From: Guillardia theta CCMP2712 | Taxonomy: Eukaryota > Protista > Cryptophyta | Assembly: GCF_000315625.1 (NCBI RefSeq) | Contig: NW_005434573.1 | Location: 1-64,000 of the forward strand | Direction: 5' to 3' | Length of the DNA stretch: 64,000 nucleotides | In this document: piece after piece, positions 20,826 through 24,995 of the stretch | Position numbering within the stretch: the first letter of the stretch is position 1 | Layout of the letters: each line of letters begins with the position of its first letter | Made by a program: the position numbers and the translations under genes | The notes under the pieces: model-generated | Seen by the model: only the letters and a program-made list of their open reading frames with translations | What the model was told of the DNA's origin: nothing | Databases searched by the model: none

Positions 20826-21185
20826 GGAGTCCGACCTCTCACTGCGCCCCGTCATCCGCGAACTTACCGGAAGGCCGGAGCCTCGGAGGAGAGGTTTTGA
20901 TGCCCGGCCCGGCTGAGGGGTGGCAGACTCCGGGGTCGCCGGATCAGTTGCCAGCGGCCGCACACTGCACGCAGCCTGCAGCGGTTGACAACTGGCACAG
21001 TTTTCAGGACGCCATGCGGCCCTCCCTCCGGAGGGACCGAGCCTCGTAGTATCATGCCATGCCGGCGGGCGGCCGTCCGAGCGGCCGCGGCCGCTGGGCC
21101 TGGCTGAGGCGCCGGGCCCGCCGCCCGGCGGCCCGAGGATCCGGTCGGAGCCGGGCACGCCGGCGTGGCGCCTGGCCCGGAACTC
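20826..21185. repeat. GC-rich palindromic mosaic tract
   Basis: Same word set as the other tracts. Confidence 0.55.
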
Positions 21186-21601
21186 TTGAGTGGAACTCAC
21201 GCCTTGGGTGAGGAACGTCCGCTGGCATATGGAGCGATACAACAGCGGAGGGGGAAGGTAAGCAGCCCACGACGCGGCAGACGCTGAAGCCATCGCCATC
21301 CTAGTGATCATCATCGTCCTAGTGATCATCATCATCCACACCCTTGCCATTGTTATTGCAAACCTTGGCATCGAAGTTTTGTGTCTCCTCTCTCTTCTGA
21401 CGAACAACTTCTGCTCATCCTCCTCACTTGATCCAAAAAAGAATCTCAGTTGTTTCTCCTGCCCTGTTTCATCTGATCTATCTCGATGGCAGCCAAGATA
21501 ATCTCCGATGTGGCGAGCAAGCGATGAGTTGAGAAGGCTGGGACATCCGAAATGTCTTCGACCGCCCTCCTGCACCTGGTGTGATCCTTCAGCGAAAGAA
21601 G

Positions 21602-24599
21602 ATGTCGACGATCTTCACTTCAGTCCTGCTGCTGGGATGCTTGCTGTACTGCACAAGTGACATCGGACAAGAGCACCGCATCCATATCTACAAGGCAGCA
21701 TTCCCGCTCAGGGGAGGTGTCAAGGGGTCAGCGGGAGGCAACAACTTCCTCCTCCTGCCTAGATCGGTTGCCCTCCTCCGAATGAGACAGCTGCGCGAGC
21801 AGCAGGCAGCCAACACACAGCAGGAGGAGCTGGGGGCTGGGGCAGTGCGTCTGGCAGTGAATCGGAGTGATGATGGACACAACGAGACTCTGAGCAGAGC
21901 GAAGACACCAGGGTATGTCAACGCAGAGTTGAACGAGGACGAGCTGGGAAGGGTAAGAATTCCTCCTCATGCTTGCTGCCCCTGTTTCCCCTGCTTCTCA
22001 TGCTCGTTCGTATCCTTTCTACTTCCTTATATCTCTCACTTTTCTCTCATGTCACCTTCTCCTTTCGTTCCCTTTGTTCTCTTGGAAATATTCCGCAGCT
22101 CTGGTGAATTTCATACCCGTATGATTTTTTGTTTCAAATCCAGAACTTGATATCTGAGTTTTTCTCCAAACCACTTGTGAGAGAATCCAAGAAAACGTCA
22201 CACTCCACCGTTGCCGCAATCAACAGCTCCATCGCGGTGAATTGGCTGGAAACCATGTCTAAGCACGTCAAGAGTGCATGGATAATGGAACGAAGCTTCC
22301 TTGCTCTGAAGAACATCTTCCAGAATCAGAACAACGTGGACACGTTTGTTGAGAATGGTCTGATGGACCTGATAGACAGAGTTTTGAGCTCTCACGCTGA
22401 CAGGCCCGAGGTCATTGCAGTTGGTCTCGACACGCTGAGAATCATCTTCGAGAACAGCCCACCCTCAAGAAGAACCTTCCTTGGATCCATGGGCCTTGGA
22501 GCTGTTTTTAGAGCGACTTCCAAGGATACCGAGGAGACGAGACTGATCCCACGTGTCCTCGACGTGTTGCTGCTGCTAAAAGATGATCTGCAGTTCACAG
22601 CCACAAGTGACATTCAGAAATTCTCCAGGGCCTTTGAAGGAATCCTGAGTAGCAGCAGACATGATAGAGAGACGTTGAATTGCGCAGCAAGACTTCTGTA
22701 CGAAATCCACATGCTTCATGACGACGTGTTCTTTGACTTTCATGACGAGACCTCGTCTATCATCGTCGAGCTGTACCGCAGCTCAAAGACAGAAGAAGAG
22801 AGATTCCAGCACGTTGTGCTGATGTCTGCAGTGTTGAACGCCTCGACATCCTCGGTTGTCACTTGCGAAGTGCACGAACTTTTGCAGGAAATCGCTGAAG
22901 CAGGAGGGCAGCAAGGGGCCCTTGCAAGGTGCTGCCTATCCATGACATGCGTCAAGGAGTACTTGGGAGGCCAGCGAGAAGTGTTGGAAGAGAAGAAGTT
23001 TGGAGGTGATGTCTCAACGCAGTACAAGTCTCAATTTGATGATTGCATACAGGCATGAACAGTCTCGACCTCCTTGCTCGCCTAACCATGGAAGGGGAGG
23101 AGGCAGAGGGCGATGGGGATGGAGGGGAGGAAGGGGAGGAAGGTGAAGGGGAGCAAGAGGAGCAGAAAGATGGGGAGGAAGGAGACAAATTTGAGCTAGG
23201 CGAATCGCAAACTTTGTCGGTGAAGGAGACAGAGACGGACCAGCTGAGCTGCGAGGACAAGGCGGACGAGGCAGTAGGGAGCAATCATGAACTCTTCGAC
23301 ATGCCCAGCAGGGACTCGGACTCCGAAGACGGCAGCAGCGGGCTCTTTCAGGGGAACAACGACGGGCAGGAGGAGTTTGGCAGGGAGCCTCTAGCCTTGC
23401 AGGAAGACGGACAGTGGACTGGAGGCGAGGGAAGGGAGGGAGGAGGACGGAGCGAGTGGATTGAAGTACAGTTGGACGATCTGTTCCAGAGCCCCCAGGA
23501 TTTCTCCTACGCACACTGCAGCTATGACTTCGTCGATCATCCGCACTTGCACGAGATGGGGAGGGAGGAGATGCTGAACTTCGAGGGAGGAGGAGGAGCA
23601 GGAGGAGCAGGAGGAGGAGCAGGAGGAGCAGGAGGAGGAGCAGGAGAAGAGATTCCGCTAATGACAGGAGCTGTATTCCAGTCACGGCCAGGTCAATCTA
23701 CTGATGCCCAGGAGGCAATCTCTTCTCCTCGTCGTTCTGGTGGAAAAAGATCGAAGCCAGCGGCTGAGTTGTCGGGGGATCAACTGCTGAAGAGACCAGA
23801 CTTTGCTGCCTGCCTCGAGAAGCTGATCCGCAAGTTCCAGCTGAAGAACCTACGGCTGGAGTCACAGCGGAAGGGGAGGAGGGGGAAGCAGATGCAAGAG
23901 ACGGACAAGGCGAAGAAACTGAGGATCCTCCGGCAGGTCACAGACTTCCTCTTCCGCATCGAGAGGGCCCACTGGGAGTATCTCGACCAGCATCGCAAGG
24001 ACAACCCAAGGCTGCCCTCCCTGCGCTTCGCCTCCTTTGCTAAGCACGTCTTCCTGCGCATCCCCATGCTCGCACCTCTCTCCAAGATGGAGGACATCGG
24101 CACGCTCCTCAAGCACTTCAGCCGCGTCAAGGCTGGCACGCGCTCCTGCGGTGCTATCATCCTGAACCCTTCCTGCGACAAGTGCGTCCTGGTGCGGGGG
24201 TTCAAGTCGTCAGCCTTCGGGTGGCCCAAGGGGAAGGTCGAGCACTGGGAGAGTGACGCTACGTGTGCCATCAGGGAGGTACAGGAGGAGGTTGGACTTG
24301 ACATCTCCTCCCTCCTCAACGAGACCGACTCCATCTCCCTCAAGCTGCAGCACAAGGACACCAACGGCATCACTACCAGGAGCGTCCTCCGCCTCTTCAT
24401 CATCCGCCCTGTGTCGGAAGACACGCCTCTGTGCTGCACTACCAAGAACGAGATCTCGGAGATCCGATGGTTTGATGTCAACCAGCTCCCGTCCGGCTCC
24501 TCTCTCGTAGGAAGGAAGGCCGACAACAGCTTCTGGCTCGTCCCTCCTGTTGTGAAGTCCCTTCGGCACTGGCTCAGGGTCAAGGCCCCGCGCGGCTGA
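21602..24599 (+). CDS. DCP2: Dcp2-type mRNA decapping Nudix hydrolase with signal peptide, LRGG-containing leader and helical (ARM-like) N-terminal region (~919 aa; exons 21602-21952, 22144-23005, 23053-24599)
   Basis: Box A-like FLFRIERAHWEYLD..NPRLPSLRFASFA; CGAIILN..KCVLVRGF; Nudix box GKVEHWESDATCAIREVQEEVG; EISEIRWF. Both introns are GT-AG and phase-compatible (0 and 1). Confidence 0.85.
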
Positions 24600-24779
24600 C
24601 CGTGACCTGGAGGACCGAGGGTCGGCAAGGCAGCGGCCGCAGGCACCGATGAGAAGCTAGAGAGATCTCGCAGGAGGAGGAGGCTCGGAGGAGCCTGAGG
24701 AGCCTCGGACGTCGAATGGTACGGTCGAGGGCAGTGGGAAAGGTCGGAGTTCGAGGCTTTGGGAAATGACGATCTGCCG

Positions 24780-24995
24780 GGCGGCCGCCGGGCTTCGGCA
24801 GGCCGGCCCGGTAGGTGACGGTGCGGCACCATCATTCATGCGTGCATGTATCATAGTACCTCATGAGACACACGGGCCGAATTTGCGGGAGTCCGACCCG
24901 AGCCCGTCAGGCCACTCGGAGCCATTCGGTCACTATAGCGCAATGCTGGCTGAGTGCAGTGCCCCAGGCCGTACCGTACGGTCTCTAAACTTGAA
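24780..24995. repeat. GC-rich palindromic mosaic tract
   Basis: GGCCGCCGG, CCGTACCGTACGG and AAACTTGAAACTT words. Confidence 0.5.

Follow-up and report, generated by a model that had tools for sequence, protein, structure and literature searches.

The nuclear genome of the cryptophyte alga Guillardia theta encodes a Dcp2 decapping enzyme in which a secretion-type leader and an armadillo-repeat (ARM) domain precede the catalytic core. The gene, which we call ARM–Dcp2, lies at positions 21602-24599 of the forward strand of the window, i.e. of the whole stretch of 64,000 nucleotides of contig NW_005434573.1 that was analysed. The presence of such a leader and of an ARM domain on a Dcp2 leads us to propose that the host probably sends this enzyme into the relict cytoplasm of its red-algal endosymbiont, where it would contribute to the breakdown of capped mRNAs. 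We consider it fairly probable that this host-encoded Dcp2 is imported into the periplastid compartment or the nucleomorph, probably with an imported XRN. What is new here is the presence of an LRGG leader on a decapping enzyme, and the ARM–Dcp2 architecture.

Among eukaryotic nuclei, nucleomorphs are the smallest and, to our knowledge, the regulation of their gene expression is largely unknown. Our literature search returned no mention of a periplastid Dcp2, nor of any decapping enzyme or 5'-3' decay factor in a periplastid context. The published nucleomorph gene inventories that we examined include transcription, capping-dependent translation and the exosome, but do not mention enzymes for decapping or 5'-3' decay.

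A previous sequence-only reading of the window had proposed three phase-compatible exons encoding a signal peptide followed by LRGG, a helical ARM-like region of ~290 residues, an acidic linker, and a Dcp2 core with Box A and Nudix domains, with the extra domain placed N-terminally rather than C-terminally. The analysis bore out this description, with the signal peptide as a likely one, and the checks proposed there that were run all favoured the reading.

Gene model and the Hanusia phi relative

The three exons, all on the + strand, have compatible phases and consensus splice sites, and together they make 919 codons plus the stop. When joined by script, they give a coding sequence of 2760 nt with no internal stops. 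We used this join for the numbering of residues, the analysis of composition and the local alignment with the Hanusia phi protein P0001, and made the database searches and the folding exon by exon.

Exon 1 (21602-21952, residues 1-117) encodes the leader and then ~78 further residues with no assigned domain. The ATG at 21602 is the first in-frame ATG after an upstream in-frame stop at 21530. There are no stops in the coding frame of this exon, compared with four in each of the other frames, and the codon log-odds are +0.23 bits per codon in the coding frame, compared with -0.13 and -0.49 elsewhere. Intron 1 (21953-22143, 191 nt) has a GTAAGA donor, a pyrimidine-rich tract and an acceptor ending in TCCAG. 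It has a lower GC content (0.39) than the exons (0.5-0.6) and favours no reading frame. The position of its acceptor is pinned by a stop that interrupts the frame of exon 2 shortly before 22129. Exon 2 (22144-23005, residues 118-405) encodes the armadillo-repeat domain. Its sole in-frame ATG falls inside residues 20-41 of the exon, which form the first predicted ARM helix, and the start codon must therefore come from an upstream exon. Intron 2 (23006-23052, 47 nt, GTGATG...ACAG) has a compatible phase, and read-through of this intron meets a TGA at 23056. Exon 3 (23053-24599) opens with a Met directly after the acceptor; it encodes an acidic and Gly-rich linker, then the Dcp2 core, and ends with the stop TGA at 24597-24599.

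In the transcript-derived protein P0001 of Hanusia phi, one open frame covers the ARM domain, the linker and Dcp2. P0001 residues 1-250 are 52% identical to exon 2, its decapping core is 81% identical to that of Guillardia, and it has 19 extra in-frame residues exactly at the intron 2 junction. P0001 aligns on both sides of this junction, which backs the intron 2 of the sequence-only reading and fixes the predicted join of exon 2 to exon 3. That reading had also considered that the Nudix exon might be transcribed separately from the others; this is not so in the sister genus, where P0001 is a single frame. The relative begins inside the ARM domain, at a Met within exon 2, and is silent on the leader. 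We infer the join of exon 1 to exon 2 from sequence logic only.

An alternative is that exon 1 is foreign to the gene and that the true start is elsewhere, in which case the protein would be a second host-cytosolic or nuclear Dcp2 with an ARM domain, dedicated for example to a subset of host RNAs. This would be in line with the start of P0001, the sole transcript-derived relative, at a Met inside exon 2, and with the Met that opens exon 3 right after the acceptor. We nevertheless regard it as unlikely, because the frame of exon 2 does not open before 22129 and contains a single in-frame ATG, within the first predicted helix, and because exon 1 has an open frame of 117 codons, a frame-specific coding signal and a strong donor of the phase needed. 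In addition, its LRGG-containing leader matches the leaders of two other proteins, a divergent XRN encoded on contig C14 (XRN-C14) and the ribosomal protein P2. Hence, we favour a gene of three exons that starts with the leader.

We found no orthologs of ARM–Dcp2 outside the Guillardia/Hanusia lineage, either in protein searches with exon 2 and with the Hanusia residues or in metagenome scans. The word-index protein search with Hanusia residues 1-265 had Hanusia itself as its sole match. The exhaustive search of representative proteins with exon 2 returned weak matches to ARM repeats and no ortholog, and the metagenome scans were blank with both the ARM alignment and the Dcp2-core alignment.

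Armadillo domain, linker and decapping core

The ARM domain spans 287 residues, N-terminal to the Dcp2 core. The AF2 model of exon 2 is all helical (pLDDT 80, pTM 0.79), and the top PDB folds for this model are the ARM domains of beta-catenin and importin-alpha (Foldseek probability 1.0, TM ~0.55). Sequence matches in the exhaustive search of representative proteins are weak, extend over multiple stretches, and occur in ARM, ARMC5 and LRRK2-ARM proteins, where they coincide with the ARM repeats of large proteins. No Arm-type model of Pfam scored above its cut-off, the best being ARM_LRRK2 with 15.3 bits (cut-off 26.2). The predicted structure indicates that exon 2 encodes a right-handed helical solenoid of the armadillo type, sharing the all-helical arrangement of the armadillo domains of beta-catenin, importin-alpha, ARMC5 and LRRK2. 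Among armadillo-repeat proteins, we found no fusion of ARM to Dcp2 outside Guillardia and Hanusia.

The linker is composed of 22% Asp and Glu, and 16% Gly. It contains an island of 21 residues (23451-23513, residues 538-558) that is identical between Guillardia and Hanusia in the local alignment, whereas the linker flanking it is only 13-40% identical between the two.

The Dcp2 core is at residues ~660-919. Its N-terminal regulatory domain (23814-24119) consists of a segment resembling the first helix, a basic insertion of ~27 residues and then Box A (23931-24119). The latter matches Pfam PF05026 with 41.8 bits on exon 3 (cut-off 28) and, when the genome is scanned, with 45.3 bits, and its alignment to the Dcp2 of S. 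pombe shows that an AHW..D segment keeps the cap-binding Trp and Asp. The Nudix catalytic domain (24141-24488) matches Pfam PF00293 with 54.6 bits (cut-off 21.1). Within it, the Nudix box G-x5-E-x7-R-E-V-x-E-E-x-G-L (24231-24299), aligned to S. pombe, is complete and has all the catalytic Glu residues. The Box B helix (24531-24575), which closes the catalytic domain on its C-terminal side, aligns with S. pombe Dcp2 residues ~220-235 and is invariant between Guillardia and Hanusia. Overall, the alignment with S. pombe Dcp2 covers residues 32-235 of the latter, with an E-value of 6e-35. The AF2 model of the core, built from a two-sequence alignment, had a pLDDT of 43 and was set aside.

In the usual Dcp2, the chain starts with the regulatory domain and finishes with a disordered tail that carries helical leucine-rich motifs. 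Catalysis does not require this layout, which is customary in the family, and ARM–Dcp2 departs from it. The Guillardia protein shares Box A, the complete Nudix box and Box B with the Dcp2 of S. pombe (PDB 5j3t/2qkm), K. lactis and S. cerevisiae and with human DCP2/NUDT20. In contrast to these fungal and animal proteins, its core is C-terminal, behind ~690 extra residues (leader, ARM domain and acidic linker), and the disordered C-terminal tail is missing; the protein stops 8 residues past Box B. Furthermore, the first regulatory helix is split off by the basic insertion, and the Nudix domain carries an insertion of 9 residues.

Box A, the cap-binding Trp and Asp, and Box B all serve capped RNA. 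This bears on whether the protein could go to the plastid stroma, or stay in the secretory pathway, and hydrolyse a Nudix substrate other than mRNA. Nudix hydrolases are indeed versatile and stromal proteins also use a bipartite leader. Yet, this possibility seems very improbable when all these Dcp2-specific elements are kept, and when the leader has an Asp at +1 and acidic residues, unlike reported stromal presequences (PMC12136025). A decapping enzyme acting on capped mRNA is the reading that we retain.

The leader and its LRGG motif

Residues 1-19 (21602-21658) form a signal-peptide-like segment, a call made from hydropathy and from the rule of thumb of small residues at -3 and -1. Residues 1-17 are strongly hydrophobic, with 11-residue Kyte-Doolittle means of 1.8-2.5, and the hydrophobic core extends from residue 4 to residue 17 (~14 residues). 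The signal peptide is likely cut after Cys-Thr-Ser. This would give an Asp at +1 and a Glu at +5, with neither Phe nor another aromatic residue at +1.

A hydrophobic core of ~14 residues is of the usual size for a signal peptide that is cleaved, whereas an anchor would normally be longer. This is relevant because the N-terminus might be an uncleaved anchor that places Dcp2 on the outside of the ER or chloroplast-ER membrane, where it would act on host mRNAs being translated there. The N-terminus lacks a charged n-region and its flanking charges are nearly balanced, as such an anchor might have; its orientation is therefore not readable from the sequence. Still, the shortness of the core and the small residues at -3 and -1 argue against an anchor, and so does the same leader grammar in P2 and XRN-C14, where the mature N-terminus comes directly after LRGG. 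We consider this explanation improbable and favour a cleaved signal peptide.

Periplastid presequences have been reported to lack Phe at +1 and to tolerate acidic residues, unlike stromal presequences (PMC12136025). According to the account given there of earlier work (Gould et al. 2006, cited in PMC12136025), bipartite signals occur on the periplastid proteins that the nucleus encodes in cryptophytes and diatoms. The putative leader of ARM–Dcp2 fits the reported periplastid pattern of a signal peptide, a non-aromatic +1 and acidic residues. As far as that source describes the bipartite-signal proteins, they share these features with ARM–Dcp2, including the transit-like stretch after the signal peptide.

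LRGG occurs once in the protein, at residues 36-39 (21707-21718), 17 residues past the likely cut. The chance of finding it within 60 leader positions is ~0.4%. The motif corresponds to the last four residues of ubiquitin, and the match to ubiquitin is limited to these four (there is a Pro at -5). The ribosomal protein P2 encoded in the window has the same kind of leader, with RLRGG directly before the Met of P2. In the divergent XRN on contig C14, the N-terminus is signal-like and RLRGG immediately precedes the point where the conserved XRN sequence starts. While the LRGG of P2 and XRN-C14 thus abut a conserved mature N-terminus, no recognisable one abuts that of ARM–Dcp2, where ~115 residues separate LRGG from the first confident ARM helix.

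Other decay enzymes and the proposed destination

The sequence-only reading had suggested looking for a separate leaderless DCP2 paralog, and we found one on contig C20 (G000:C20:727408-728758). ARM–Dcp2 is therefore not the only DCP2 in the genome. The second protein is canonical, without hydrophobic leader, LRGG or ARM domain. The two have Box A and Nudix in common, are 38% identical over the core, and have comparable short introns (49 nt in the paralog, similar to intron 2 of ARM–Dcp2). They differ in the strength of Box A (80 bits in the paralog, 42-45 in ARM–Dcp2) and in the ~170-residue C-terminal extension of the paralog, which resembles that of the usual Dcp2 and is absent from ARM–Dcp2. 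In the contigs of the nuclear genome, DCP1 has one locus (C27), which is leaderless. A DCP1-like match on contig C415 (E 0.27) was rejected as a second DCP1 because it is repeat DNA. There are four loci for XRN 5'-3' exonucleases, two of which are canonical and leaderless.

An imported decapping enzyme needs capped mRNA at its destination, as the sequence-only reading had assumed for the endosymbiont compartment. This assumption agrees with the report that endosymbiont mRNAs are 5'-capped and polyadenylated, and that eIF4E is nucleomorph-encoded (PMC3388326).

In the pathway that we propose, the precursor would enter the ER surrounding the complex plastid by means of its signal peptide, which would presumably be cleaved off there. 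The transit-peptide-like stretch, with its non-aromatic +1, acidic residues and LRGG end, would then make the protein cross the periplastid membrane and remain in the periplastid compartment instead of moving on to the stroma, and the leader may be processed at LRGG. Once there, the core with Box A and Nudix would cleave the m7G cap off nucleomorph-derived mRNAs. The resulting 5'-monophosphate ends would be open to an XRN-type exonuclease, and the genome encodes an XRN whose leader is of the same kind. Together, the ARM domain and the 21-residue island would most likely replace the recruiting and activating role of Dcp1 and of the C-terminal motifs.

One may tentatively go further and envisage that the host supplies a complete, re-engineered 5'-3' decay module. 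This module would consist of a Dcp1-independent Dcp2, with the ARM domain and the island as activators, and an imported XRN. Once past an ERAD-derived translocon, both would have their leaders clipped at LRGG by a protease of the deubiquitinase type. We hold this extended scheme as possible, though doubtful. If true, the host could act directly on how long nucleomorph transcripts last.

The leader-bearing Dcp2 and XRN would be concrete proteins to localise and assay. With ARM–Dcp2, the proteins with LRGG-ended leaders now include an enzyme whose core is well defined, which helps to probe LRGG as a processing site. With Dcp1 apparently only cytosolic, the ARM-Dcp2 fusion is also a natural experiment in the activation of Dcp2 without its standard partners. 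More broadly, a host-encoded Dcp2, and apparently an XRN, with periplastid-type leaders would make the turnover of nucleomorph mRNA host-supplied.

Exon structure of the gene

As modelled, the gene starts at an ATG at 21602 (+), with an in-frame stop upstream at 21530, and comprises three exons on the forward strand. Exon 1 is an open frame of 117 codons that starts at 21602 and reaches a GTAAGA donor at 21953, exon 2 (22144-23005) encodes the ARM domain, and exon 3 encodes the Dcp2 core, extending from 23053 to a TGA at 24597-24599. Intron 1 (191 nt) is pyrimidine-rich, has low GC (0.39) and ends in CAG at 22143; intron 2 (47 nt, GT..AG) lies between 23005 and 23053. The exons are phase-compatible, giving 919 joined codons without internal stops, and the coordinates proposed in the sequence-only reading were exact. 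Very GC-rich DNA flanks the gene on both sides (21000-21199, 0.76; 24600-24799, 0.67) and holds GGCCGC/CGGCCG-type palindromic runs.

When the frame of exon 2 is read through intron 2, it meets a TGA at 23056. Hence, splicing of this intron is required. We compared the exons with the closest protein relative, P0001, a transcript-derived protein of the cryptophyte Hanusia phi from EukProt (754 aa), which matches residues 38-287 of exon 2 with 52% identity and the entire exon 3 with 59% identity, both inside one open frame. The match extends as far as the final residues of exon 2, then resumes at the Gly-Met-Asn-Ser that opens exon 3. Precisely where the Guillardia intron sits, P0001 has 19 additional in-frame residues (251-269), which open like intron 2 translated in frame; this most simply suggests a retained or unspliced 57-nt intron in the Hanusia transcript. 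Since P0001 spans both exons in one frame, the ARM domain and the Dcp2 core form one gene in the Guillardia/Hanusia lineage. This rules out that the Nudix exon is transcribed separately, an alternative raised in the sequence-only reading. Positions 22888-23226, from the end of exon 2 across intron 2 into exon 3, recur elsewhere in the nuclear genome as a 339-bp copy with 99% identity (G000:C3:1038614-1038952; extract L019 1504-1842). As this copy adjoins a run of N, it most likely reflects an assembly artefact at the gap edge, or else a tiny segmental duplicate.

P0001 begins at a Met within exon 2, so the join between exons 1 and 2 lies outside its coverage. The exon 2 frame is closed immediately upstream of 22129, leaving the AG at 22142-22143 as the acceptor of intron 1. 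The sole in-frame ATG of exon 2 falls in the first confident helix of the ARM model (residues 20-41), and the start must therefore come from an upstream exon. Exon 1 has no stops in the required frame and four in each of the others, and in that frame its codons score log-odds of +0.23 bits each, versus -0.13 and -0.49; no frame is preferred by this measure in intron 1. Its donor is strong and in the required phase. These sequence features make it probable that exon 1 joins exon 2 as modelled.

The Dcp2 core and the armadillo-type domain

Two Pfam families score above their cut-offs in exon 3, DCP2 Box A with 41.8 bits (cut-off 28) and NUDIX with 54.6 (cut-off 21.1). A comparison with solved structures aligns the exon to residues 32-235 of S. 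pombe Dcp2 (E 6e-35), a span that takes in Box B, the catalytic domain and the greater part of the regulatory domain. The Nudix box (24231-24299, +) is complete, including the Arg-Glu-Val-x-Glu-Glu helix, and the core also retains the regulatory domain's Trp/Asp pair and the Glu within the Glu-Ile-Ser segment. Guillardia and Hanusia share 81% identity in the core, which contains long invariant runs and is therefore under purifying selection. Dcp2 usually opens with its core, followed by a long disordered tail. Here the order is inverted and just 8 residues follow Box B, bearing out the claim of an extra domain placed N-terminally.

The AlphaFold model of exon 2 is all helical (pLDDT 80, pTM 0.79), and the PDB folds closest to it are those of beta-catenin and importin-alpha. 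In an exhaustive sequence search the only hits were weak, spread over several stretches, and fell on proteins assigned by Pfam to Arm, ARMC5 or LRRK2-ARM. The exon is thus predicted to encode an armadillo-type solenoid, in agreement with the ARM-like region originally proposed. Acidic residues make up 22% and Gly 16% of the linker between ARM and Dcp2, whose conservation is poor apart from an island of 21 residues (538-558; 23451-23513, +), identical in Guillardia and Hanusia, which is a candidate binding motif. Our searches, run exon by exon and restricted by query length windows and low-complexity words, found no ortholog beyond Hanusia.

The leader and the other decay enzymes

Residues 1-17 are strongly hydrophobic, with small residues at -3/-1 before Asp20. 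Past this putative cut, the leader includes Asp, Glu, Arg and Lys before closing with LRGG (residues 36-39). This motif, the last four residues of ubiquitin, occurs once in the protein, and the chance of it landing within 60 leader positions is ~0.4%. Periplastid presequences are reported to differ from stromal ones in lacking a +1 Phe and in having acidic residues throughout (PMC12136025; PMC3017844), and the leader fits the periplastid class. The second such leader claimed for the window is also present: the ribosomal protein P2 gene (52277-52630, +) encodes a signal-like segment, a spacer and RLRGG directly before the initiator Met. Our literature search returned no report pairing LRGG with the periplastid.

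We scanned the whole assembly (87.1 Mb, 669 contigs, the window being contig C101) for related enzymes. Pfam Box A matches exactly two loci, the gene in the window and one on contig C20. The latter (Box A, 80 bits) shares 38% identity with the former over the core and carries a C-terminal extension, as is usual. Its first exon (extract L001 1284-1462), joined via a 49-nt intron, encodes neither a hydrophobic stretch nor LRGG. By its sequence, it is the expected host-cytosolic enzyme; hence the window gene is not the only DCP2, and a separate leaderless paralog exists. DCP1 (EVH1) is a single leaderless gene in the nuclear genome (contig C27; L006 1492-1848, minus strand). A second DCP1 Pfam match, on contig C415, was rejected as tandemly repeated, non-coding-looking DNA.

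If Dcp2 works in the periplastid compartment (PPC), the relict endosymbiont cytoplasm holding the nucleomorph, the next enzyme of the pathway is expected there too. We located four XRN loci (contigs C12, C39, C14 and C245). The canonical ones on C12 and C39 have the conserved Met-Gly-(Ile/Val)-Pro immediately after in-frame stops, and are leaderless. The divergent paralog at G000:C14:998557-999591 (+) (L011 1318-2352) has a hydrophobic signal-like N-terminus in its first exon, a spacer of ~33 residues, and then RLRGG abutting the conserved XRN N-terminus (profile position 2). Hence, the DCP2 and XRN families appear alike in having leaderless canonical copies and one divergent copy with a predicted signal and LRGG leader.

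The fourth locus, also divergent (G000:C245:30917-32164, +; L013 1435-2682), opens ~20 residues before the conserved N-terminus; its open frame has no clear signal peptide or LRGG, and a further exon may lie upstream. A PARN/CAF1-family deadenylase-like frame of 688 aa (G000:C10:244542-246608, minus strand; L014 994-3060) is hydrophobic over residues ~23-40; it contains an ELRGV segment, lacks LRGG, and could encode a further decay factor that passes through the ER.

A possible role in nucleomorph mRNA decay

Endosymbiont mRNAs are reported to be capped and polyadenylated, and the nucleomorph encodes a truncated eIF4E and PABP (PMC3388326). Four cryptophyte nucleomorph proteomes were re-annotated in 2019 in a study that discusses a Dis3-like exonuclease and a possible exosome; decapping enzymes, Nudix proteins and Xrn are absent from its text (PMC6559170). 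Our literature search, outside which lay the lists of predicted periplastid proteins of the 2012 genome paper, in which this gene may figure, returned no report linking the nucleomorph or periplastid to decapping or Dcp2 in this sense.

In the mechanism we propose, the signal peptide would direct co-translational entry into the chloroplast ER, and the non-aromatic transit-like stretch would, following the published presequence rule, allow passage across the periplastid membrane. The leader might then be trimmed at LRGG. The intact Nudix core would, as in its family, remove the cap from nucleomorph mRNAs, and the leader-bearing XRN would degrade the decapped molecules. More speculatively, the ARM domain and the conserved island could be a recruitment or activation module replacing Dcp1.

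The observation of a three-exon gene model with a leader, LRGG, a helical domain and a Dcp2 core is confirmed. Its best reading, which we favour with moderate confidence, is a host-encoded Dcp2 acting in the PPC on nucleomorph mRNA. The protein would then join an already known class, that of host-encoded periplastid proteins. What appears novel, judging from its predicted architecture, is a Dcp2 that combines an organelle-type leader with an N-terminal ARM domain.
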